Source: Dimorphilus gyrociliatus (Eukaryota; Animalia; Annelida). From it: a DNA stretch of 54,533 nt. Below, piece after piece: positions 7,701 to 54,533 of the stretch. The stretch's first letter is position 1, and every line of letters begins with the position of its first letter. A program made the translations under genes and the position numbers. Where the stretch lies: NCBI GenBank assembly GCA_904063045.1, contig CAJFCJ010000059.1, forward strand, positions 1 through 54,533, read 5' to 3'. The notes under the pieces are model-generated. The model did not search any database. It was not told the origin of the DNA and saw nothing but the letters and a program-made list of their open reading frames with translations.

Positions 7701-10325
7701 GTTTCTGTAAAAATTATAGTTTTGAAAAGATTTTCAATAAATTCTTTCTCAAGGTTTTTTCAAAACCTGCTGGAGTAATGCAGTTAATTGCTGTAATTTC
7801 CTTTGTATGACATTCTGCAGGATGGATATTATAGGTTTTACTTTTAACCAAAGACTGGAGGAAATCGTATTGTACAATTTTTGATACAGCTGATGAAAAC
7901 TGGTAGTAGAAACAAGATGATACTTTTGATACTGTTGGCTTTTGAATAAGATGAGATTGAACTTGAGCACACAATTCAAGTTGACTGAGATTTAACCACA
8001 AAAAAAGAGTATGTTTGTATTTACAATACTAATTATCTCTACCTTGGTTGAAATGATGTAAATTCAAAAGGTTTATTATCTAAATGAGCTGTTACAATAT
8101 TATTTCTTCTATCTTTTATCCTCTTCAATTCTTGTCATTTTTTTGAAAAAAAAAATATTGAATTATAAAAAAGAAAAAATCTATCATCCATGTTTTTTTT
8201 TTTTTACTTCCGGCTAATATTAATTTATTTCTAAAAGGTTTCACATTAAACATTGACATCATTCTTAAACTTTCCAAATTGATTAGAAATTGATAATTTT
8301 TGAAGGATAAATGTCCAAGAGTACTATTTCTACTTTTACAATACTCTTCAGTATTATCAATTGATAATTTCCTCTTCATACTTATATAAATGTAACAGAG
8401 ACTTTGATACAAAAATGCCTCTTTATCAATACACCATCTTGTTCTATTCAATTTACATTCAATATTCATATGACCAGAGTTCAGTTTGTCAAACAAATGT
8501 TGATATTTCGGATTGAGTATATTATTTGAAATGTTGCCAATAAGTGAAAAAGAACATTGTACAGAATTTATATACGAAATATCGCTACATTTCATTATTG
8601 CGTAATTGAATGTAAACATATTTATGTTTGTCAAATATTCAAAAATTGTTGCCGATTGAAAACCGAGTGTCTTACATAGGCTGATTAAATGTTTTAAACG
8701 GAAAGTATCAAATACGGGTTGAAACCACAAATTATTGTAAAATATTTGTAAATTTCCACTAAATTCATTAAAATTATGTTTGTCACCAAAATTCAAAATA
8801 TTATCTTTATCTTTATAAATTCTATAATGGAAATCTGTAGAAAAATACTCAATAAATCATTTTTAAAAAATCTATTAAAATATACAGTTACAAACTTTTA
8901 TGGATTTTCTTCTCATACATTACAAACAATAACTTTACATTTGTATATTCTAATTTTAAATTACATGTTTTTAAATTGTATTCAGTTAAATTACAACCAA
9001 TCATTGTTGGAAGTCTCAGATTGTTAACTACTGTAATAGTCCTTGTACAATAATAGTATTTTAGAACCTGTTTTGTTAATAGTATTGATTTAAATGCAAT
9101 AATGGATAGGATAGAATTTAAAACTATTTAAAAAATACATAATTCTTGTATAAGCCTGTTTTGTAAATTGGACTGAGTACTTTGGAACTGGCTTTGGTCA
9201 AAGATAGTGCTATTTTTGTTATTTCTTTTGAATTTATATAAGTAATTGGATTATGTCCCATTGTTTTAGAGTTAATTACATAGAATGATGATTCAGAGAG
9301 GATAATCTCTCCAAAGAGAATTCTATTCAAATGACCAGAATACTTTTCAATAACAAAATCTATGAAGAAAAGAGACAAGTTTTAGGAACTTTTTATTAAA
9401 ATTCTTTGTCAATATAAAGTAAATTTTACCATTCAAATCTGTAAATTTACATACAACTCTTGCTTGTTGAAAGTCCTTGGAATAATTTTGAAATGTTACA
9501 TTTTTATGGTTTAAATTTAAAAAACTAATAGAATGATTATCTAATTCATCTAATTTGAAATCTTTTATAAAAAATTCACTTTTCCTACACAGGGCTTCCT
9601 TTGCCAGTATTTTTTGATAAAAGAACCTAAATGTTCTCTTCCGATATCTCGTGTACAGAATAAAGTTAGTTTCTCTGTCCAGACTGGCAGCAAATAGATC
9701 TGTAAACAAAAAAATTAGTAGGCTTAAGTAAATCAATAATAACTGATTGATTGATACATGGCTGTTTAATTTTAAAACATTTCAAGCAGATTAAACCAGT
9801 TTTTTCATCTATCTCTTTGACTTTATAGCTATTGGGAAAAACAACTTGGACCTTCTAATTTTTTTCTACCAGTTGTCATCAGTATTGTTAAAAATACTTA
9901 CAAATTGAAATTTTTTTTTCTGACTTTAAGAAAGCCAGTTATTTTTTCTAATAAATTTAGAAAGAAATTATTTGTTTTTTAATAAAAACATAAGAAATAA
10001 TGATACCTTTAGAATTTATGCAACCTTGCAATATATAATGTATTGTATCATATCCCATTGATGAACAAATACGTTTAATATATTTTGGAGAAATGTCAAA
10101 TTGAAAGCCAAGCGTTTCTGTTTGATTATTTGAAATGGTTCTAAGCCTTAAATTTCCATAAATAGAATGTTCTTTTTCTTCAATAGGATTGAGAGAAAAT
10201 TTAAAATATTTCTCATTTTTGAGTACAGTAGTGTAAATTATTTCTCTTTTACATCTTAAGGAAATAACAAATAAAAATTTTGGTAAAACAACAAATAGAA
10301 AGAGAAATATGTTTGAAAAAAGCAT
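4785..10325 (-). CDS. Multi-exon GRL101/relaxin-receptor(RXFP)-like GPCR: signal peptide, SRCR-like, C-type-lectin-like, about 6 LDLa, LRRs, 7TM
   Basis: ATG at 10325 with hydrophobic leader. SRCR-like GNLQIFYNNLW...LCKTLGF and CTL-like CYIY...EEYC (8125-8796). LDLa repeats such as CDGNNDCISGEDEKYC and CDNIVHCTEYDDESNC. LRRs and FELCC hinge (5293-6552). TM3 ITIERF, GWLYS, TM6 LIVITNVLCWFPIAVLG, TM7 LPLNAVVNPFLYT. GT-AG introns. Confidence 0.85.
5321..5339. repeat. (GA)n microsatellite in a receptor intron
   Basis: agagagagagagagagag; it explains the SLSLSLS tail of the ORF-track protein. Confidence 0.85.
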
Positions 10326-14560: not shown

Positions 14561-14628
14561 GAGACAATATTCTTTTCTCCATTTACAATCTTTAGAGGTG
14601 AGATCTGTTCTTTGCCTGATTCTTTGTA

Positions 14629-14678
14629 AATTCCTACAATTACAATACAACAAAGTACAAATATGGCACAGTCAACAG
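14629..14678 (+). mobile_element. Family B LTR 3' end plus tRNA-Ser-type PBS
   Basis: TTCCTACAATTACAATACAACAAAGTACA matches the family B LTR end and is followed by TGGCACAGTCAACAG, nearly identical to the PBS at 18382. Confidence 0.55.
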
Positions 14679-14999: not shown

Positions 15000-16430
15000 G
15001 AAATTGGAAATTGTGTTATTTTGAAAAGTGAACTGTAAAAATTGATAAACTTCTTCAATTTCATAAGAGACAATTCCATCTCGATTGCTATTTTTCTGTA
15101 TTACCTTTAGAGAGAATATTAAAGACATGACTCACCTGTATAGTATAATAGTTTTGTATGAATCATATTAATAATTCTTTTATCAATAGTTGACAAACTG
15201 TTAAGAAGAGTTGAAGCCTTATCTTAGAATTGAAGAGAATTGTAGCAGATTAAGACTAGCCAATGAATCCAATAAATTAGAAGCAGGGAAAGAATAAATA
15301 TAAATTATAAATTGGTTAGGCAAGAACACTACAGTATTTTAATATCTTCTCTTCTGACAGCATTATTTAAAAAGCTGATATAAGATCTGCTTCTCCTTTC
15401 AATTTAAATGACTGTGCATCACAATTCAGTGGTTTAAATAGAGAAATCACTTCTTTATGATCAACATCCATTAATATAATTATGTTATGTTTTATATTGT
15501 AAAAGAATTAATATAAAATTCAAAATATTTTCAGAGTAATGAATACCAGTTTTCCTTATTACAAAACTATATTTTACATTGTTTTTTCCTTTTCCTGTTT
15601 TGACAAATTTAGAAGATATGTTTCTTTTTTTCATTTTTCATATAAGCTTTGATAGAAATCACAACATGAATTTGAAAAACTGTTGGAAGTGTGGATTCAA
15701 ATTTCATTGGACACAAAGAAAATTCAGATACAAGTTGTGCAGACATTTTTATCAAGCAAAATGTTCAAAATATAAGTAAAATCTCTAACTTTCTGGGGTT
15801 TAATGCTAATCAGTTATATATTAAGATGCAGATTATTGTCCTGATTGTCATGATGTCAGCAAGCAAAAATTATTTATTAAATTAAAGAAAATAGATAATT
15901 ATCATCAGAGTGAAAGTCCTCTAGAATATTATCTTTAAATTTTAAGATAATATCTTCTGTTATTCCTTTACCTGTTTTTCCATTGTCACCAGTTGCCATT
16001 TCTTTCAAGCCCATTCTTGAATGAAGAACATTTTCCATGTTTTTATGCAACTTATGAAGATGATTTTCATTTCTTACAATGAACTTTGAAATCATCTCTA
16101 TCTCCATGATGTTTCAAAATAACATTTAGTCAGCAATTGAATCATATGCTTTTGGCTTTTTCTTTCAATTGAACATTGTAGATTCTAAATTTAAGTTACT
16201 GAATGTTCAATGCAAAGATATACTTTTTCTCCCTTTGTAAGCAAATAGTGTAAAACTATTCCAATCCCAATTCCTAATTTACAATTGAAATTTTTATTGA
16301 AAGAAAAATAATTGTTAATCATATTGTTACATGCAGCAAAGGAAACAAAATGAAAAACCATTGTTTTGAAATTTAAATCCTTCAATCTGTTGTTTGAAGC
16401 AACAAATGAAATTATAACCATATGTTTCAA
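15000..16430 (-). pseudogene. Heavily decayed NACHT-type NTPase (NLR) paralog
   Basis: CKLGIGIGIVLHYLLTKG resembles the Walker A region GKPGIGKSVQVKYLLHKW at about 53330. NVLHSRMGLKEM resembles Walker B VVLLIDGADEL. Many stops. Confidence 0.4.
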
Positions 16431-16478
16431 GGTTATTATGGTTATTATTCAGTTATACCAGTTTTCATTTAAATAATT

Positions 16479-16533
16479 CTGGTTCAATACTACTTCTCTA
16501 TTGTAGAGTATAGCTGACAAATATATGCGTACA
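16479..16533 (+). promoter_or_regulatory. 55-nt dispersed host motif directly abutting the folB ATG
   Basis: Ungapped near-identical copies at 40450-40504 (+) and 54108-54162 (-); diverged copy at about 38775-38822 (-). Regulatory function is inferred only. Confidence 0.55.
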
Positions 16534-16892
16534 ATGGATAAAATTATATTAAAAAATTTAGGTTTTTATGGCTACCATGGCGCCATGTCAGAGGAAAATA
16601 CACTGGGTCAAAAATTCTTTGTGGATTTAGAATTAGGTGTAGACCTAAAAAGGCAGTCAAAAGTGATCGAGTGCAAGATACAGTACACTACGGAATGGTC
16701 TATGATGTGGTTAAAAACATAATAGAAGGTCCTCCTATTAACTTGATGGAAGCTTTGGCTGAACAAACTACAGAAGCTATTTTTAAAGCATTTGAAAAAG
16801 TAATGACTATTAAAGTAACTCTAAAAAAACCAGAAGCACCAGTGGCAGGTATTTTTGACTATATTGCTGTAGAACTTTATAGGGAGAGATAA
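16534..16892 (+). CDS. folB: Bacterial-type dihydroneopterin aldolase, intronless, with a 1-nt frameshift in the A5 run at 16647-16651 (pseudogene or assembly error)
   Basis: [39 protein letters not shown], then frameshift, then [18 protein letters not shown]...NLMEALAE...[24 protein letters not shown]. Adding one A gives 119 aa with the FolB active-site Glu, Tyr, Glu and Lys motifs. Confidence 0.9.
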
Positions 16893-16910
16893 GATGCATA
16901 TGGTTTATTT

Positions 16911-17135
16911 AATGTTTAAATTAAAACGGTTTATTCGCAATAATAATACTTAAGCAAGTAGTAATATGAGAGTTCAATAGCAGGTTGCCAAATTACCAAA
17001 CTGTCTTCCAATGTTGAGGAGTAGATGGATGGTTCCAGTGAAGGTGTTTCCAGGTTATCTTCCCAGGTCCTAGGGTCCAGATGAAGACGCGGTGCAGAAT
17101 GAGAATAGCATGTAAAATATAACCAAAGTTGTACA
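16911..17135 (-). mobile_element. Internally deleted solo LTR, family A
   Basis: Begins TGTACAACTTTGG on the minus strand at 17135 and matches the LTR A R region; lies 18 nt after the folB stop. Confidence 0.85.
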
Positions 17136-17325
17136 GTAACATGGGTGATCGTTGTGCATTAGTAGATGAAGCTGTGAAACAACTAGACACCCATATGAAT
17201 ATCAAAGTGACAGGTCAAAGTGTCTATTATGACAGAAGACACCTGATATGGTTAGTCCATAGAAGAGGCCCTAAGCAAAATAGAAGATCAAGCAATTGAA
17301 CATTTGTAGTTCTTGTAAATATTTA

Positions 17326-17745
17326 GGGGTCGACAGAAAACGTCCATGAAGAAAAACGTCCATGAACCGAAAGAAAACATTCACCATTAAGGTTATCAAT
17401 TTCCCTACAGTGAATCTTTTTAAGGAGTGCCTTTTAATAAATGACCTGTGTGTTTTTAATTAGAATGTCACTCAATTTATAAATACGTGGATAATCTGAA
17501 CTTTCTATATTCAGAAAAGTATCCCAAACGAATATGTTATTCTTGTAATAGGCTAATTGAATAAAAGTTTCTTTTTTGGGTTCAGACAGAAAACGTCCAC
17601 AAAATTAAAACAGTCAAAAGAACTGGTAAAAAAAAATTTTTCTTTATAAAACTTTATAGAAAAGTATTACTTTTATATGTATAATTGATTATATCTTCAA
17701 AAAAACATGTCTTTGATACTTAAAATTAAGGGACAGAAAATATCC
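17326..17745 (+). repeat. DNA-transposon-like terminal region with repeated CAGAAAAC(G/A)TCC motifs
   Basis: Motif at about 17333, 17348, 17587 and 17734; the same core forms the TIR of the MITE at 48274-48481. Confidence 0.4.
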
Positions 17746-17749
17746 ACAT

Positions 17750-18377
17750 TGTACAACTTTGATTATATTTTACATTCTTGAACTGTATTATTTGATGCAA
17801 CTTATACATGTACATCTTAAAACCTACGCAAGAAAATGCTTGGCCAAACATAAGTCTGATTAGTCAGCAACAAGGCTCATCTTTAATTACCAATAAAGGT
17901 TTGGCCAAGTTATAATCTAATTAACTTGCCTAGGGTGTCGCCAAGTTATAATTCAATTAACCTTCCTAAATGTTGAACCTTGTAACATCCTGTTACTAAA
18001 GATAAATATGAAATACACATTTCAGCAACTGTAAAGTGATGATTGGATGTCAGAGGCAAACCTCAGAGTATATAAATCTTCATTATTCTCATTCGGCATG
18101 CAGCTTCCATCTGGACCCAAGGACCTGAGAAGATCACCTGGAAACAACCTCCCCTGGAACCCTCCATCTACTCCTCAACATTGGAAGACAGTTTGGTAAT
18201 TTGGCAACCTGCTTTTACGAACTATCTACTCTGCTTTAGAGCTCTCATATTGTTACTTGCTTAAGTATTATTATTGCGAATAAACTGTTTTAATTTAAAC
18301 ATTTGTTTAAAGGTTTGATTAGAACCAGTATTGTTATAACTTTCAAACGCATAAATTTTGCCAGCAAGAGAAGTACA
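17750..18377 (+). mobile_element. 5' LTR (family A)
   Basis: TGTACA...AGTACA termini, TATATAAA at about 18070, AATAAA at about 18279; direct repeat of 25187-25741. Confidence 0.9.
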
Positions 18378-18381
18378 AATT

Positions 18382-18399
18382 TGGCGCAGTCAACAGGAT
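18382..18399 (+). promoter_or_regulatory. Primer-binding site, tRNA-Ser type
   Basis: TGGCGCAGTCAACAGGAT, 4 nt after the LTR; resembles the TGGCGCAGTCGGTAGGAT tRNA-Ser PBS of Drosophila 17.6/297-group elements. Confidence 0.75.
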
Positions 18400-18437
18400 A
18401 TTCTTTTGGTTTATTCAAAAGTTTTGAGAAAGTAAAT

Positions 18438-18767
18438 ATGGCAGAAGGAGGAAATGGAAATGCCACTGGGGCAGTTACAGACTCTAACCCTTCAACCCCA
18501 GCAACTCCAACAATTACAATTCAGCCAGCAGAAATGTCAGAAAGGCAACAAAGACTAATTGAAGACTATGATAGATTGGTGAGTGAAATGAAAAGAAATC
18601 GAATCACAATTCCAACAGATCATGGAGATGGAACACATCACCCAGCACAGAACCCAAATGTTGATATCACAACAGTAATTCAAGCATTAAGGGCTGCTTG
18701 GGACCGCCCTCAAAGAACTATTCTCAAGTTGTATGATGGAAGCAAGGAGTGTTCAAAATTCAAGGAA
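18438..18767 (+). pseudogene. gag: gag N-terminal half
   Basis: MAEGG...KLYDGSKECSKFKE; continues in register with RYNYLAYQY.W at 20730. Confidence 0.75.
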
Positions 18768-18774
18768 GTAATGT

Positions 18775-19110
18775 TTTCATATGTAGATTGTCAATGAAAT
18801 TTTTGCTTTTTATAGAAATGATATCTACTCAAAAAAGGAAATAAAAAACAATTTAAAAATAATAGAGACTGAGAGAGAAGACAAATTTATTTGTTTTTTA
18901 CAAGATTGTGATTTATTGTGGCATTTTTTCAAGCATAAGCCACTGATAATGAAATATCACTAAATGAAACAGTAGGAATAAATATTACAATTGTATCTGG
19001 AATATTATTCAACCTAAACTATATTATTAATAAAAAACCATTCAACAACAAACCAAGAGAAATAAATGTCAAATTGAAATTTTTCATGAAAAATTGTCTC
19101 TCCAATTTGT
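18775..19110 (-). pseudogene. Class A GPCR pseudogene fragment (TM1-TM3) inside the insert
   Basis: FISLGLLLNGFLLII*, FIPTVSFSDI, ICLLSQSLL, SRY...KFH with several stops; truncated at the gag junction. Confidence 0.5.
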
Positions 19111-19507
19111 ATAAATGTCAAGTCAAGGTCAACTGAATGGTTGTAGACAATGTAATATTATCATCAAATCCAATGATTTTTTCCCAATACACAAGAATTA
19201 GGTGGAAAGTGATGATGGATGGAATAGATGGAATAATATGGGATAAATTCTCTCATCATCTTCTCTCCTTTTAAGTTGTTAATGGATTGCTGCTAAATTT
19301 TTAATCATAGCTATTTTACTAATCAAATTTTATTAGAATACCTTTTAGGCCTACATTGATTATTGATTAGAGTAAGACTCTAAAAATGGCTTATGCCTGG
19401 AAGGGATAATATAGAGGAAATGCTAACAAAAACTAAAATACCATCAAATCTTAGTTTCTAAGCTATTGGTCACATGATTTAAGGATTTATTTTTAATTCC
19501 AACTGAC

Positions 19508-20413
19508 TCATTTGCAAGTAAATTTTTTCAATAGATTTGAATAAAATTTCTTAGTTTCGTGTTTTATTGACACTTTTGTGTAGCCATGAACTAATGGATT
19601 GATTGTTGAATTTGAAAGAACAACTGCTCTAAATGAATCCCTGAGTAATTTAAAATCCAACTCTGATAGAGAAAATGTTTGCTGACTCCCATAATGTGTT
19701 ACTATAGTGATTATAATAGGTAAAATCCATAAAAAACAATTGAATATTATCAAAAATGTTAGAACCCTGATATTACTTCCTTCATTTGCAAAATTTTCGG
19801 CATTTGTTACATCAGAAATTGCTTTTCTCTGTTTCCTTACTGCTCTGAGAATTGGAATAAATAATAGTAAACTGGTAATGGCATTTGGTAAAACAGTACT
19901 AAATGACCAAAAATACATATAAGCAAATGGAAAAATATTGTTAGTGTTACAATCAAAAGTGGAGTTTTGTTTTAAAACAATTTCGTATCTGTTCCAACCC
20001 AAAACTGGAAATGAACATATAATAAGAGAAGTAAACCATATAAAAGAAAGTAGGATAAATGCATTCCTAGTTGTCCATAGTTTATGGAATGTTAAAGGTT
20101 TTACAACAGCTAAATACTTTTCCAATATTATTAATGTTAATGTAAAAGATGATACTGAAACAATTAGAAAAATTGATTGGTTAAAAATGAGGCAACTGTA
20201 AAAATTCGTCTGCTCTTTATGAAGAATAAAGAAACATAATAGGCTTATTGAATATAAAATATCTGTAAATGTTAATGCAGTAACACCAAAATTATGCAAT
20301 TTCCATAAATCCTTATTAATTGTACCAATAATGATTAAATTACTATTTAAACAAAAACCAATAACTTGATTAGTACATGAAACTAATAATATCAATTTTT
20401 GTGCATCAATCAT
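19508..20413 (-). CDS. Intact single-exon class A (rhodopsin-like) orphan GPCR, 301 aa
   Basis: Seven hydrophobic segments; TM2 LTFTD, EKY (DRY variant), FPVLGWN, TM6 CFLWILP, TM7 NSTINPLVHGY. Confidence 0.9.
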   Translation of the reverse strand: MIDAQKLILLVSCTNQVIGFCLNSNLIIIGTINKDLWKLHNFGVTALTFTDILYSISLLCFFILHKEQTNFYSCLIFNQSIFLIVSVSSFTLTLIILEKYLAVVKPLTFHKLWTTRNAFILLSFIWFTSLIICSFPVLGWNRYEIVLKQNSTFDCNTNNIFPFAYMYFWSFSTVLPNAITSLLLFIPILRAVRKQRKAISDVTNAENFANEGSNIRVLTFLIIFNCFLWILPIIITIVTHYGSQQTFSLSELDFKLLRDSFRAVVLSNSTINPLVHGYTKVSIKHETKKFYSNLLKKFTCK

Positions 20414-20729
20414 TGTCTTTCAAATACAGAAATTTTTTGCAGTAGATAATGCAAGAGATATTTAACACTGAACCAAATATATATAAAATCTGATGAGTCA
20501 TATATCATTTATAATATTTTTAATACAAATTAACAGATTACTTTTATATCTGCATTTATTATTTATATATTTTTATATCAATAGAAATTTTCTTAGTTTT
20601 CCACTTATTTTCTTTCTTTTTTTGCTCAAATCAGAAATGGCTTATAATGAATCATCAGCTGTTTACTCTTTTGTTGGAAAAACACATAAATCTCCCTTAC
20701 CTGTCCAAAACAGCTTACATTTTATATCC

Positions 20730-22416
20730 AGATACAACTATTTAGCCTATCAATACAAATTGGGCCAACAGAAAACGTCCCCAAGTGAGATTTTATTTAA
20801 CTGGCCCTGCAAAGGATTTGGTGTTGGCCCTGGATGGAGAGCCTACTGTAGAGGAAATATGGAAAGCCCTCCATGATGAATTTGATCTAGATCCCTTGGA
20901 GTATCAAGAAAAATTGCTGAACTTAAAGCAAATGAATGGCAAAAGTGTGGTTCAGTTTGTTAATAGAGCAAAGAAATTGATAAAGAGGTTTTCTCCACCT
21001 AGACCAATGGAACCACAAGTGCTTGCAACTATGAAAGAAATAAAACTGATGGAAGTTTTACAAAGAGGATTACAACAGGATATTCTACATTTAGTGTACA
21101 CCTTACATCCTAAAAGTCAAACATTGGCAGAACTATATGAGGCTGCTAAGCAAGCAGAAACTTCATTAAAACTAACTCAAAGAAAACCAATCACAATGGT
21201 GTCAAAATTGGAAACTCAACAAAGAAAAGAGCCCAAAAAGACCCAGGTAATCAGAAAAGATGCTTCTACAGAAACTCCAAATTTTTGGAATAGAAAGCAT
21301 GTACCTGACAACAAAAATGCTACTAAAGAAAAGTTTTCAAGCCAAAAAGTCCAAAAGTATGCACCAACTCCAACAAACAGGTATTATAAGAAAAATCAAC
21401 CAGCAAAGACAATACTGAAAGAGGAACCTAAGCTACAAAAATTAGAAACATTAGACAATGAAAGCATGTCAGAAAATGACAAAGTTCAAGATATTCTCTG
21501 TTTTTCAGATAGTGATGAATCCACTTGTCAGCTGTTACAAGGCAAACAATCTGAGCAAAATGCTTCAACATTTATTGGACAATTTGAAACTAATACTGGT
21601 TTTAAGTTTGATGCCTTGATAGACTCTGGTAGTGACAGATCTTTCATTTCAAAAAAGGTATTAAGACAAGTTCAAGGAAAAGCATTCTTTCCAGAACAAA
21701 CTGTGAAAAATGCTAGAGATGCGTCAGGTAATAGCATAGAGATATTTGGAGAAATCATTCTCAGACTTTATTTTAATGGAAAGATTATTAAACAATGCTT
21801 TCTGATCAACAAAATCATTACACAACAATGTATTATTGGGTGTGACTTTCTACAACAAAATGGAGCTACCCTTGACTTTGGCAAGAGGCAGATTATACTC
21901 CAGCCAGGTACAGAAAAGAATTACCCTCTTGGAACACAACACTTATCTTTCAAAGGATTTTATCCAGTTCCTCTTACTATGAAAAAGAATGAGAGTCAAA
22001 TACATACCCTTCAGACAACAATTGAACAAGAAAATCCCGAGATGAAGGAAAAAGTTACCCAAATTCTGGCAAAATATAAAGAAACTATTGCAGAAGACAG
22101 ATTTGATATTGGCATTCCAGAGGTACCATCCTTAGAAATTACTCTTCAACCAGGTTCAACGCCATATAGACAAAAGCCATATAGAATGTCACCTCAAAAA
22201 CAAGAAGAATGCAAACAACAGATAGCTGAGTTGGTAAAAAGCAAACTTATTCAACCAAGCAAAAGCAATTTGGCTTCACCAACTGTTTTTGTAAGAAAAA
22301 AGGAAAGTAATCTACAAATGGATGTAGATTATAGAAAACTAAACCATGGCTCTTCATCAGAAATCTCAGATAGTGACGATTCAGAGATGGAAGTTACTAA
22401 TTCTGATACTGGTTAA
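20730..22416 (+). pseudogene. gag-pol: gag C-terminus, aspartic protease and first residues of reverse transcriptase (truncated)
   Basis: RFYLTGPAKD...W...F (gag); ALIDSGSDRSFIS (protease); PYRQKPYRMSP...ASPTVFVRKK...DYRKLN (RT start), then an abrupt switch to acidic sequence after 22344. Confidence 0.9.
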
Positions 22417-22820
22417 AAAGCAACACTTTTGAAACAGACTGTAATTATGGTTCTAATGAACTCTCAAGCTCAACTGAAAGTGATGACACTGTAATGAATA
22501 GTGAACTGAATCAAAATAAACATTCAGAGGCAAACATTATTTCTGATATTATAGAAGAAGAAACATCTAATTCAAATAATGAATCAATAATTATTGAAGA
22601 TTCATCCAAAGGAGAACAAGAAAATCAAAGTGACACAGACAAGGATTCAGTCATACTTTTAGATGAGACTGAAACTATCTCTGAAGAATCAGATTCTGAA
22701 ATAGAAAGGAAAACTCGATATTTAGAGTTAGAAGATGAAATAACTATCAGAGTGGAACCAAAACAAGAAATTTTCAACCATTCAACTATAGCCAACACAG
22801 GAAGAGCTAACATGAAACAG

Positions 22821-25177
22821 ATGTAGTGGCTTCCACTAGTGATGACTGTAATGGTGATCTATGGCTGCATCCACTCAAAAACAGTTCCAAAACCATCCTA
22901 CCAAGGCACGCATGTTACAAGTGCAAACATTACCTTAACATTTAAACCACTATTATACTTTTGTTCTAACCAACTACCAAGCCAGGCATTTGATCTAGCA
23001 GATGAGCTGACTTGTAATATAGAATCGCAAGAAACCAAGACAATTACAGCTGATATCTATGAATTGAACTTGGAAGAAATTGAAACAAGAGCAGTAAAAT
23101 GTCAAGTGTATCTAAGAACTAACTTTTACACTTACTATTTCTTTGGAGCAAAGAAGAGGAGAATTGTTAACTCAGTTATTAAAGTAACTCATGATCAATG
23201 CAACAGATGGTAAAAGACAAATGATCTTTTCAAGGAAAACCTTTAATGGTGAAAAGAAACATTTGGATCCACCAAGATCAGTTTCCTGCTGCCTACACAT
23301 GGCCAACAACTACCAAGGTGCTGGAATACACCACAATTATCCAGTTTGGCAAAGCATATTGGCAACCTCCTAATATGAAAATTACAACTAATCTAGACTA
23401 CCTGGAAGATTGTTTACCAGGGCAGTCCTATTGTGAAACAGAAGAGGCAATTATTGTCTTTAGAAACCTCAAGAATAATTACACACTTGGGCAACAATCA
23501 CCATGGATAAAAATTAGCAACAGAATTAGTTGTATAAAATTTGCTGGTCACTATTCTTGTCCAGGGTATTCTATTCTGGACATCCCTTATCAAGACAAAT
23601 TCATGGATGGAATTGGTGGCCCTGGAACAAAAATGCTAGTACCACTAGAGGAACAGAGTTTAATACAGGAAACAGGCAAGGAACACCTATACAATTTGCT
23701 ACAATATCAAAAGATTGGAAAAAATGAAGAAAAACGACTATTAAACTATCCCAATAAAGTGAAAGAACAAATTATACTATACAAGCAAAACAACCCCTTA
23801 CCAAGTCTTAACCAATGGTATAGAGAAACAAACACAAAGTATAAACTAATGAGAAATAAAGGCACACTCAAGGAAGTTGTGATATATCATCTACAACAAC
23901 CCATTAGTCCATCTTACTGGGAGCTGGATAACTATTATATCCAAGAAATGCTGCAAGCAGTCAATTGGACAAGGGCAACAAGACAATCTATTATGATTTC
24001 AAAATATGTATATAGTGAGAAAAGAATCAAACAGAAGGTATTACCAACATTGGGCATATGGTATAAAGGACCACCAGCCAGAGAATTTAAGATTACCCAT
24101 GAAGGAATTTATTTTACTCTACACATGTGAATGGCTAAAAAGCAGATGAAGAAGGAAGCAAAACTGAAACATAATATAAGTAAAAACCCATACCATAAAT
24201 TCCCACTGGAAATGAGAGAAGCTGCCCAAACATCTACCTTACTATATGGTATTGATTCAAATTTTAAGAACTTAAAAAAGTTTACCCAACAGCTGTCAAG
24301 TGTTCTCTGCAATCAATTTGTTCAAAGAGGCAGGATGATGGCATTACTGGCAAATTTGGATCCTCAATTGACCACAGTGTTAACAAATGAGTTGGGAATG
24401 CACAGTAGTCAGATGGGAGAATTAGCTATAATTAAACAATGTTCACCAATAGATTCAACAGAAGTAGTTTGTGACTTAAGTGTGATAAAAAAGAATAACA
24501 AATGTTCTCAATTTTTACTTATCACCATGAACAACCTGCTTTTCCAAGTAGAACCAGTTACTCATGTTTTACAGCAAGTCGATCCTGAAGAGATTACCTA
24601 TAATGAGTGTAAGTCTAACAAGTTATTCTACAAAACAACTCACAACCCATTAAATCCTATAAGAAACCAACCAATGAAAGACAAAACATATGTGTATTAT
24701 TCAGAAAGAGGATGCAGATTTCACACTGTGTCTGCAAAATCCATGCAGTTAAATATCCACAATCACCTTTCTGAACCAAAAATTGAAATTGCCAGATTAG
24801 CTGACCTACTCCACCATGGGGTAAAGAAGGATATTGCATACCAACACTCAAAAATTAAGCAAGTCATCAGTTCACTGGAACAGAAGCAGGCAAAGTATGA
24901 TAACATGGTCACTGTTGCAGAGAAAAATGGCATTGTACCCAATCTATCTGGAATTAAGCAGTTTTTCCATAGTTGGTACTACAAACCTGGGAAAACACTT
25001 TATGTTATCATATGTAATATTTGTTTGAGTATTGTAGTTTCAATGGTATGTATCATCATTTTCAACTATATTATTGGAAGAAGAAAACAAAGAGAAGAAA
25101 CTGCTACCCCAAGTGAGAGCACAGATAACTCTCCTGAAAACCCAAAACTAATGAAACAAAGTTGTAGCTTTAGTTAA
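22821..25177 (+). pseudogene. env: env-like viral glycoprotein, probably class III fusion protein (rhabdo-G/chuvirus/gB-like); several stops and a frameshift
   Basis: Signal peptide M*WLPLVMTVMVIYG; C-x-YYFFG...C-x2-W...YTWP; LANLDPQL...GELAIIKQC...C; C-terminal TM YVIICNICLSIVVSMVCIIIF. Lesions at 22824, about 23210-23225 and 24128. Confidence 0.72.
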
Positions 25178-25186
25178 CATCAAACT

Positions 25187-25741
25187 AAGAAAATGCTATA
25201 ACATTGGCCAAACATAAGTCTGATTAGTCAGCTTCAAGGCTCATCTTTAATTACCAATAAAGGTTTGGCCAAGTTATAATTTAATTAACTTGCCTAGGGT
25301 GTCGCCAAGTTATAATTCAAATAACCTTCCTAAATGTTGAACCTTGTAACATCCTGTTACTAAACATAAATATGAACTACACATTTCAGCAACTGTAAAG
25401 TGATGATTGGATGTCAGAGGCAAACCTCACTATATATAAATCCTCACTATTCTCATTTGGCATGCAGCTTCCATCTGGACCCAAGGACCTGGGAAAATCA
25501 TCTGGAAACAACCTCCACTGGAACCATCCATCTACTCCTCAACATTAGAAGACAGTTTGGTAATTTGGCAACCTGCTTTTACGAACTATGTACTCTGCTT
25601 TAGAGCTCTCATGTTGTTACTTGCTTAAGTATTATTATTGCGAATAAACCATTTTAATTTAAACATTTGTTTAAAGGTTCGAGTAGAACCAGTATTGTTA
25701 TAACTTGCAAACGCATAGATTTTGCCAGCAAGAGCAGTACA
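25187..25741 (+). mobile_element. 3' LTR (family A); first about 80 nt differ from the 5' LTR
   Basis: Direct repeat of 17830-18377 ending CAGTACA. Confidence 0.9.
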
Positions 25742-25769
25742 ATAGTTACTTCACTGATAGGCAATATTC

Positions 25770-39961: not shown

Positions 39962-40999
39962 TAATTTAAATATTAGATCTATCTATCTATAGATGTTAAT
40001 ATTGTATAAAATTTAGTATAAAATGAAAATGTCAATTGGCAATGCTTGATAATTTAAATAAAAAGTTATTCAATCTGTTTAATTGAGTAATTAGTACACA
40101 AAAGTTTGGATGAAGCTGCCTTTTTTCCAAATCTTTTTATTTATAAAAGTCCATTTTTAGGAATTTGTCGAGAATTTTTTGCTAAGAAATTTTTCACTGA
40201 AACAGGAAGTAAGATGTACCAATTTTACGGGACCAGTCAAAAATGGCCATAGTGTATAATTTCATTAAAGATTTTTAAGATTAGGAATTTCTGGTTTGTC
40301 ATAACAATAATTATTCTTTTCAATCATTTAACAATTCACCAAAGTGCTCAAACAAATAGAAACTTTAAAATTGATTCACAAATAGTCTCAATAAATGTAA
40401 TTTTGGTAGAAATTAATCAACAAAACACCAGCCTGTCAAGCCTGCTAATCTAGTTCCATACTACTTATCTATTGTAGAATATAGCTGACCAATGTTAGTG
40501 TACAGTAAATTCATTCATTTGTTGATATGATCTATAGCATTATTTTATTATCAATATATTTTTATCAATAAAAAAAAAGAACAATTAAAGAAGAGCTCTC
40601 CCTTTCTCTTTATCTTTCTATTTAAATAATTTTCTATTAATATTGTAAATGTTAATTGTTGCTGTTTTCAAACTAAATGTTTTACTTAAGCAAAAATCAG
40701 AAGAATATCTTTAAACACTGAATTTATTTACAATTAAATTTTCATAATTCTCAGACATTTTTTTAACAATAAAAGGTAGTTTTGTACATATTAGACAACT
40801 AGCAAATTTAGCTAAATCAATGGGATGGTATATAATGTTTTCTTCATTGTTTTACTTGCCTAACAAAAAACTTTACATCTTATACAATTTTCCAATATTC
40901 AAAATTCAACTATTATTTAGAAATCTCAACCACAATGCTATTGTTAAACATTTGTATTAAATAGTATTGAATTAGGTCTACCATTTTAAAAAAAGGTTT

Positions 41000-53990: not shown

Positions 53991-54533
53991 GTCATAGACA
54001 TCAAAATTCAGGGTTAGGTTTTTGTTTTATGTACACCAAGTTAAAAGTGCTACTTATACTGAATACTGCAAAATTAAATAATTACATATGATTTAATTAT
54101 TTTAGGCTGTACACTTACATTTGTCAGCTATATTCTACAACAGATAAGTAGTATTGAAACAGTATTGTATTTTGAGGTCTTGTTTCATTAACTAAATTGC
54201 TATTGTTCATTAAAAGATAGATTATTATGATAGACTAATAACTAAATGATTACAGTTGTTTGTATGTACAAAAGATTTAAGCCTATATTTGACAGATAAA
54301 TTATGAATTTGTTCATGATTACAAAATCAATAAAGTGGTAAGCCAGGAAAAAAATTTCAATGCCCTCACTGAAACAGGGTAGGGTAAATTATATAATTTG
54401 ACTATATTTCAAGTCAAAAATACATCTGTATTATTCAAAAACAAAAACTGTATAACTAAAATCAGTTGACAATGATGAATAAAAAACCTAACAAGAGTAA
54501 ACAAGAAAATTTAACATCTTTCATGCTGTGTAT

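Follow-up and report, generated by a model that had tools for sequence, protein, structure and literature searches.

A contig of the annelid Dimorphilus gyrociliatus carries a short stretch of bacterial DNA with the genes folB and folK in the arrangement of a bacterial operon, and both genes are broken. We regard this insert as most probably a non-functional, decaying relic of DNA transfer from a bacterium to an animal. Termini of host LTRs adjoin the bacterial DNA on both sides, and the frameshift in folB recurs in contigs from two studies.

The window, by which we mean the whole stretch of DNA that was analysed, is the complete 54.5-kb contig C59 of a 77.9-Mb assembly in 349 contigs, with a GC content of about 23–35%. 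The features on which the argument depends are listed here by position in the window.

16475–16533, plus strand: last 59 nt of a host LTR (LTR-A); left side cut off, true 3′ terminus abutting the A of the folB ATG
16534–16892, plus strand: folB (dihydroneopterin aldolase) pseudogene of 119 codons and a stop, with Pfam and NCBIfam matches and bacterial identity
16894–16912, plus strand: first 19 nt of folK (HPPK), one base past the folB stop, a spacing shared with the bacterial operon; aligned to L013, L014 and L015
16913–17135, minus strand: LTR-B fragment inside folK, truncated and internally deleted, matching dozens of genomic copies
17134–17232, plus strand: folK codons about 10–42; blastn and tblastn against L013 8388–8486, 85% nucleotide and 80% amino acid identity
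17225–17309, plus strand: folK codons 131–157 and stop, past a 264-nt in-frame deletion
17749–18378, plus strand: 5′ LTR (LTR-B) of a Ty3/gypsy-type element, whose 3′ LTR lies at 25187–25742; the LTRs are 94% alike, with gag/protease ORFs between them

A broken folB followed by a wrecked folK

The initial annotation had recognized a gene with the full FolB signature at 16534–16892, and profile searches bear this out. Both halves of the conceptual protein match Pfam PF02152 above its cut-off of 31.8 bits, with 37.6 bits for residues 1–39 (16534–16650) and 68.9 bits for residues 41–119 (16653–16889), and the C-terminal half alone passes the TIGR00525 folB equivalog model (75.4 versus a cut-off of 72.15). 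On alignment to Staphylococcus aureus DHNA (1dhn), the equivalents of E22, Y54, E74 and K100, which we take to be the catalytic residues, are all kept. The E22 equivalent lies in the N-terminal SEEN motif of the window FolB, and the Y, E and K were placed by the 1dhn alignment. There is no nonsense codon among the 119 codons.

The two halves of folB are nevertheless in different frames as the result of a single 1-nt deletion within 16647–16652. An uninterrupted ORF of ~120 codons is absent, and mechanical translation yields ORFs of 65 and 73 amino acids. The lesion had previously been described as one missing A in an A5 run; that exactly one nucleotide is lost stands, but the identity of the base is not fixed. 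Relatives have ACG or ACA (Thr) at this codon, and the residue varies among T, I and Q, so that the lost base cannot be named. An A missing from an A6 run would be only one possibility.

Bacterial DNA goes on past folB, which had not been noticed before. In alignments the homology starts exactly at the folB ATG, crosses the stop codon, and enters folK one base later. Nucleotide searches with blastn place three segments of the bacterial contig L013 on the window: 8001–8385 on 16534–16918, 8388–8486 on 17134–17232, and 8751–8836 on 17225–17310. The folK sequence is heavily damaged. Codons 7–9 are split by 223 nt of host sequence (16913–17135), with seven bacterial bases (GTTTAGG) lost at the site, and a deletion of 264 nt removes 88 codons in frame at an 8-nt microhomology (TATyATGA). 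The C-terminal piece carries two nonsense codons, TGA at 17244–17246 and TAG at 17253–17255, at positions that encode Cys and Gln in bacteria. With two stops among its 63 remaining codons, folK indicates a stretch that is evolving without constraint.

About 570 bp of bacterial sequence survives in the insert as a whole. Searches with tblastn, tblastx and blastn, using the operon and six relatives against 15000–18400 and against the whole window, found no further bacterial DNA near the insert, whose true 3′ end cannot be fixed because the bacterial relatives themselves cease to align past the folK stop. We also considered whether folB is better preserved than its neighbour, and set this idea aside: the contrast in stop codons (0/118 in folB versus 2/63 in folK) is not significant (about p = 0.12), and nonsynonymous differences per site are alike (0.061 versus 0.072).

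Residence in the worm chromosome

Contigs, rather than raw reads, from four public runs (X1–X4, representing two studies and two organism labels) were placed on positions 15200–18800. Run X1 is possibly the assembly's own sample and X2 comes from another study; the two labels may refer to one species under an older and a newer name. In all four runs the contigs match the window without a difference or a gap from a point within LTR-A (16489–16508), through folB, to at least 16833, spanning the LTR-A/folB junction and carrying the same frameshift. The LTR-B/folK junction (17109 onwards) is spanned in X1 and X2. In X1 the folB contig has a depth of 104, compared with 98 and 100 for the unique flanks at 16054–16507 and 15200–15541. 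The bacterial DNA is physically integrated in the host chromosome. The initial annotation had judged it integrated rather than a contaminant contig, and this is upheld by LTR ends that abut or interrupt the bacterial DNA, by junction contigs in two studies, and by a folB depth equal to that of the flanks.

Some features of the locus could be expected of a chimeric assembly or of a contaminating bacterial piece outside the animal chromosome. At 54.5 kb the contig is short, and it is rich in repeats; each junction coincides with a high-copy repeat, and a low-depth contig of X1 with uninterrupted folK suggests that a related bacterium was present in the sample. However, contigs that cross the junctions are found at host depth in independent runs, the lesions are those typically seen in neutral DNA resident in a host, and the assembly contains nothing else of the 12-kb operon. 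Since a host LTR fragment sits within the bacterial gene, with bacterial sequence on either side, and contigs span the junctions, we consider contamination or chimeric joining very unlikely and give this explanation the least weight of those considered.

The low-depth contig of X1 has a depth of 10.7, compared with about 100 for the host, and connects 16912 with 17134 by way of GTTTAGG, so that its folK lacks the LTR; its depth profile places it only from about 16817. A related bacterium of the donor clade in the worm sample fits this contig better than an LTR-free allele does. Other runs show irregularities of their own. Past 16845 the folB contigs of X3 and X4 continue with 32 letters unlike the window, and that of X2 ends at 16833. 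The depth of folB is ~2–3 times that of the covered flanks in X4 (22.8 versus 7.3) and X2 (85.9 versus 38–47). These anomalies of X2–X4 could reflect structural alleles or further transposon insertions, and they suggest a second structural form of the locus.

The same contigs bear on the possibility that folB is functional now, the frameshift being either an assembly error, as had been entertained for the A5 run, or bypassed by −1 ribosomal or transcriptional slippage on that run (A AAA A). The lesion does lie in a homopolymer, where long-read assemblies err, and after a −1 slip the P-site tRNA-Lys could re-pair, with the next codons then in the FolB frame. Yet the contigs of four runs from two studies are identical to the window across the site and show no gap, which speaks against an assembly error, and a run of A5 is short for efficient slippage. 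With folK wrecked and no RNA run containing the locus, present function of folB is highly improbable.

The host sequences at the two junctions are recognizable as LTR ends. LTR-A belongs to a host LTR family of ~940 bp that begins TGTAC and ends GTACA. Its 59-nt terminal motif forms the end of the ~940-bp unit in the 13 genomic copies that we read, in which the upstream sequence is conserved and the downstream flanks are variable; it occurs at no fewer than 190 genomic places and at ~400 times single-copy depth in run X1. The initial annotation had noted flanking host repeats that recur in the window, and they do: diverged copies of the 59-nt motif are present at two further sites, 40453–40513 and 54098–54158, where none is expected by chance, and LTR-like sequence of the kind that begins at 16911–16913 recurs at three, 17749–18378, 25187–25742 and 2315–2689, as well as on dozens of other contigs.

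The copies at 40273–40513 and 54098–54158 are short, internally deleted LTR-A derivatives, consisting of the 5′ part with the last ~60 nt or of the last ~60 nt alone. These older copies end in GTAAGT or GTTAGT, which had been read as a splice donor. We considered the 55–59-nt motif as a spliced leader, a 5′ exon or the mark of a retrocopy, with folB as a processed retrocopy, and rejected this, as the motif is an LTR end with TG...CA termini and variable downstream flanks.

The LTR-B fragment inside folK has its 5′ terminus (TGTACAAC, minus strand) at 17135, adjoining the resumed folK. The bases at 17134–17135 (CA) fit either the LTR-B terminus or the bacterial sequence, giving a two-base overlap of the parts, and the bacterial sequence thus resumes at 17134–17136. 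An LTR terminus marks each of the two junctions, LTR-A/folB and LTR-B/folK, and on the side away from the junction each LTR piece is truncated. Ordinary LTR insertion followed by deletion is one history that would fit these junctions; repair of a break by end-joining with linear retroelement DNA is another, and the loss of 7 nt without target duplication would fit the latter somewhat better.

The relic lies in a transposon nest, as the Ty3/gypsy-type element at 17749–25742 lies close by; two ORFs past pol in this element had no family match in a Pfam scan. Elsewhere in the window, large ORFs encode an LRR-7TM receptor, a rhodopsin-type GPCR, NACHT/LRR-like genes, cysteine-rich repeat proteins, a mariner-type remnant and the gypsy-type element. 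The Dimorphilus gyrociliatus genome has been described as 73.8 Mb in size, with gypsy-type 'Dingle' elements that carry a gB-like env, mariner and MULE transposons, and with transposable elements concentrated in gene-free islands (PMC7854359). The transposon content of the window fits this description.

A Clostridia donor and a second insert of probably like origin

The window FolB shares 85% nucleotide and 88% amino acid identity over its full length with the bacterial FolB P0001. Its nearest proteins, all metagenomic, are 81–85% identical over the C-terminal 79 residues, and in each of these nearest relatives folB resides in a pabA-pabB-pabC-x-folE-folP-folB-folK operon beside hydrogenase-type and thioredoxin genes. 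The spacing of one base between the folB stop and folK is also found in L013, L014, L015, L125, L126 and L127. A search with P0001 among one genome per species ranked an uncultured Clostridia MAG first (73%), whereas Clostridiaceae, Youngiibacter and others reached no more than 58%. A maximum-likelihood tree built from 80 FolB sequences groups the window sequence with metagenomic Clostridia proteins (100/98), with the uncultured Clostridia MAG as sister (100/93).

P0003 was excluded from this tree. It is the FolB of L126 (a Logan contig of SRR32120540), and its N-terminus is garbled by two compensating frameshifts. In the same contig, among genes at 475–2249, folE is split in two and folP is short, which looks like error-prone assembly rather than biology.

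By its phylogenetic placement and operon order, the donor is an uncultured Clostridia lineage, and the same protein search and phylogeny exclude a vertical eukaryotic ancestry of the window FolB. The earlier suggestion of a Bacillota-like origin is thereby confirmed and assigned to the class Clostridia. Literature searches found no publication naming the sample or contig accessions from which the environment of the donor's relatives might be learned.

A second family of Clostridia-type sequence, a GT4 glycosyltransferase, has about ten intronless matches in the genome, about eight of them with open frames of 252–402 amino acids. They lie on small repeat-rich contigs and on C19, as follows.

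GT4 matches (loci L131–L138): C98 (21398–33491), C112, C198, C268, C230 and C19:3016870–3017352

Several observations connect GT4 with folB. The best GT4 relative (92%) is on a contig from SRR28602243, the run that also gave the 47-kb folate-operon contig L013, and both bacterial contigs have a GC content of 37%. A GT4 orthologue (82%) is also present in the Clostridia MAG whose FolB is sister to that of the window. Synonymous divergence from the SRR28602243 contigs is similar, with dS of 0.73 for GT4 and 0.71–0.86 for folB. Because the two share a run and a MAG and have similar dS, GT4 and folB very probably came from one Clostridia lineage, which would imply repeated or multi-fragment uptake from one associate.

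GT4 resembles folB-folK in its donor clade, in its location in LTR-rich DNA, and in having a truncated LTR-A 3′ end upstream in the sense orientation. This end is 67 nt away from GT4 (L135 2751–2820, and the same place in L133, L134 and L136–L138), compared with 0 nt for folB. The common LTR-A end could be due to chance in LTR-dense DNA, to a shared joining mechanism, or to selection. The two families differ in that GT4 has long open frames at about eight places, whereas folB-folK is single-copy and broken. The idea that the folB and GT4 loci are copies of one composite unit was rejected, as the sequence shared between them is limited to LTR-A fragments; besides these no common sequence was found, the fragments including one 33-nt match (window 14628–14660).

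A broader proposal, which we put forward tentatively and would not yet favour over its negation, is that a lineage related to the MAG behind L033, with its nearest known members in SRR28602243, gave DNA to the worm germline repeatedly or in one multi-fragment event. The pieces would have settled in LTR-rich islands of closed chromatin, where GT4 was amplified and folB-folK is decaying, and the worms may to this day be accompanied by a relative of the donor, as the X1 contig of depth 10.7 may indicate.

Fate of the insert and comparison with known systems

We propose that a short piece of Clostridia DNA with folB and folK in operon arrangement integrated into a transposon-rich island of the small, AT-rich worm genome and afterwards behaved as neutral DNA. 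One LTR end would have been placed exactly at the start of folB, with loss of the upstream bacterial DNA (folP). A second LTR fragment would then have entered folK at codons 7–9 with the loss of 7 nt, a deletion at a microhomology would have taken 88 folK codons, two folK codons would have turned into stops, and folB would have lost one base. We infer this order of events from the lesions, and by the same reasoning the insert is probably silent and would never have served its host.

The near-intact look of folB can be attributed to a transfer that was recent relative to the divergence from the known bacterial relatives. Compared with bacterial genes, folB gives ω of 0.07–0.09 and dS of 0.7–0.9, equal to values between bacteria, although this ω, calculated without a second animal copy for comparison, mixes bacterial evolution before the transfer with any change after it. 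The GC content of folB (34%) equals that of the bacterial genes. As ω, dS and GC all have bacterial values, most of the divergence would predate the transfer, and residence in the animal would have been short on that scale. Amelioration of folB towards AT was looked for as well and is not visible, window-specific changes going in both directions.

One observation is unexpected under a purely neutral history, namely the exact match of the LTR end with the ATG. It is among the reasons to consider that folB was domesticated, used by the worm for a time, and inactivated lately by the 1-nt deletion, a course of events that we consider unlikely. In such a scenario the enzyme would, for example, have made 6-hydroxymethyl-dihydropterin or acted in pterin metabolism, with a 5′ end derived from the LTR. 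The kept catalytic residues, the lack of stops and the low ω accord with use by the host, as do the two stops in the adjoining folK and the precedent of amphioxus, which retains and transcribes a prokaryote-derived folB-folK without folP (PMC4224340). However, a low ω is expected anyway if most divergence arose in bacteria before the transfer, the difference in stops between folB and folK does not reach significance, and the last 59 nt of the LTR represent its U5 end rather than a promoter. Capture of a promoter by folB is likewise not supported, since no more of LTR-A than this terminal piece is present. Moreover, no RNA run contains the locus and the genome offers no downstream pathway. A period of folB use by the host is compatible with the absence of excess amino acid changes and of stops, yet we assign it little probability and prefer the neutral decay of a relic.

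To our knowledge, animals lack the pterin branch of folate synthesis. The rest of the genome gives folB no partners. The 77.9-Mb assembly holds one FolB only, with no second copy, and beyond the three folB/folK pieces the rest of the 12-kb operon region is absent from it. A DHPS protein search of the genome finds nothing; the only Pterin_bind (PF00809) match, at C12:1620560–1621387, consists of two separated stretches and would suggest a host gene split by an intron, for example methionine synthase, and not DHPS. The sole HPPK match in the genome is the wrecked folK beside folB. A search of an index of sequencing runs found no RNA run that contains the locus, which is weak evidence against its expression.

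Several expectations of the initial annotation are not supported by these results. It had envisaged one of several folB copies, or part of a dispersed acquired pathway; there is one copy, no DHPS was found, and there is no HPPK besides the wreck. A working enzyme for the animal is not borne out either, with folK ruined by the LTR fragment, the 264-nt deletion and two stops, and with no RNA run holding the locus. The insert would thus give the animal no new vitamin-making enzyme, and that candidate function is not supported by the sequence evidence. The reading favoured by the evidence is the fallback that the annotation had named, a dead relic of horizontal transfer.

The folB-folK relic adds one more well-documented case of bacterium-to-animal transfer, and it corrects the idea of a gained folate or pterin enzyme. 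LTR fragments at and inside the bacterial DNA, together with the microhomology deletion and point decay, provide unusually clean proof of residence in a field in which contamination is commonly suspected. The connection with GT4 suggests that the transposon islands of a compact annelid genome repeatedly trap DNA of one bacterial associate, in a pattern in which most of the trapped DNA would decay and an occasional piece be retained or amplified; this merits a genome-wide survey. If the repeated-donor reading is true, the worm and its bacterium would form a tractable pair for following the flow and fate of DNA from bacteria to animals.

Compared with bacterial FolB (PF02152, TIGR00525; closest solved structure 1dhn), the window gene has the same 119-residue length, fold family and catalytic equivalents, and has folK one base past its stop. 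It differs in that its frame is broken by a 1-nt deletion and that it lies between LTR fragments in animal DNA without folP or folE neighbours.

Decaying insertions of bacterial DNA are familiar from animal genomes in the form of Wolbachia-derived fragments in arthropods and nematodes. Like these, the present insert is a non-functional fragment in repeat-rich host DNA that gains indels and transposon insertions. Unlike them, it derives from a donor that, judged by its relatives, belongs to free-living or gut- or sediment-type Clostridia and is no germline endosymbiont, and only about 570 bp of it is left.

A parallel is found in amphioxus, in which Maguire et al. (2014, PMC4224340) described a fused folB-folK gene that is of prokaryotic origin, is transcribed, and grouped near Planctomyces; questionable or putative folB or folB-folK sequences were listed for Trichoplax and Nematostella in the same study. 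As in amphioxus, an animal genome here holds bacterial-type folB and folK without folP. In amphioxus the genes are fused, intact and transcribed, whereas in Dimorphilus gyrociliatus they remain two separate genes, as in the operon, each of them is broken, no expression was seen, and the donor belongs to the Clostridia.
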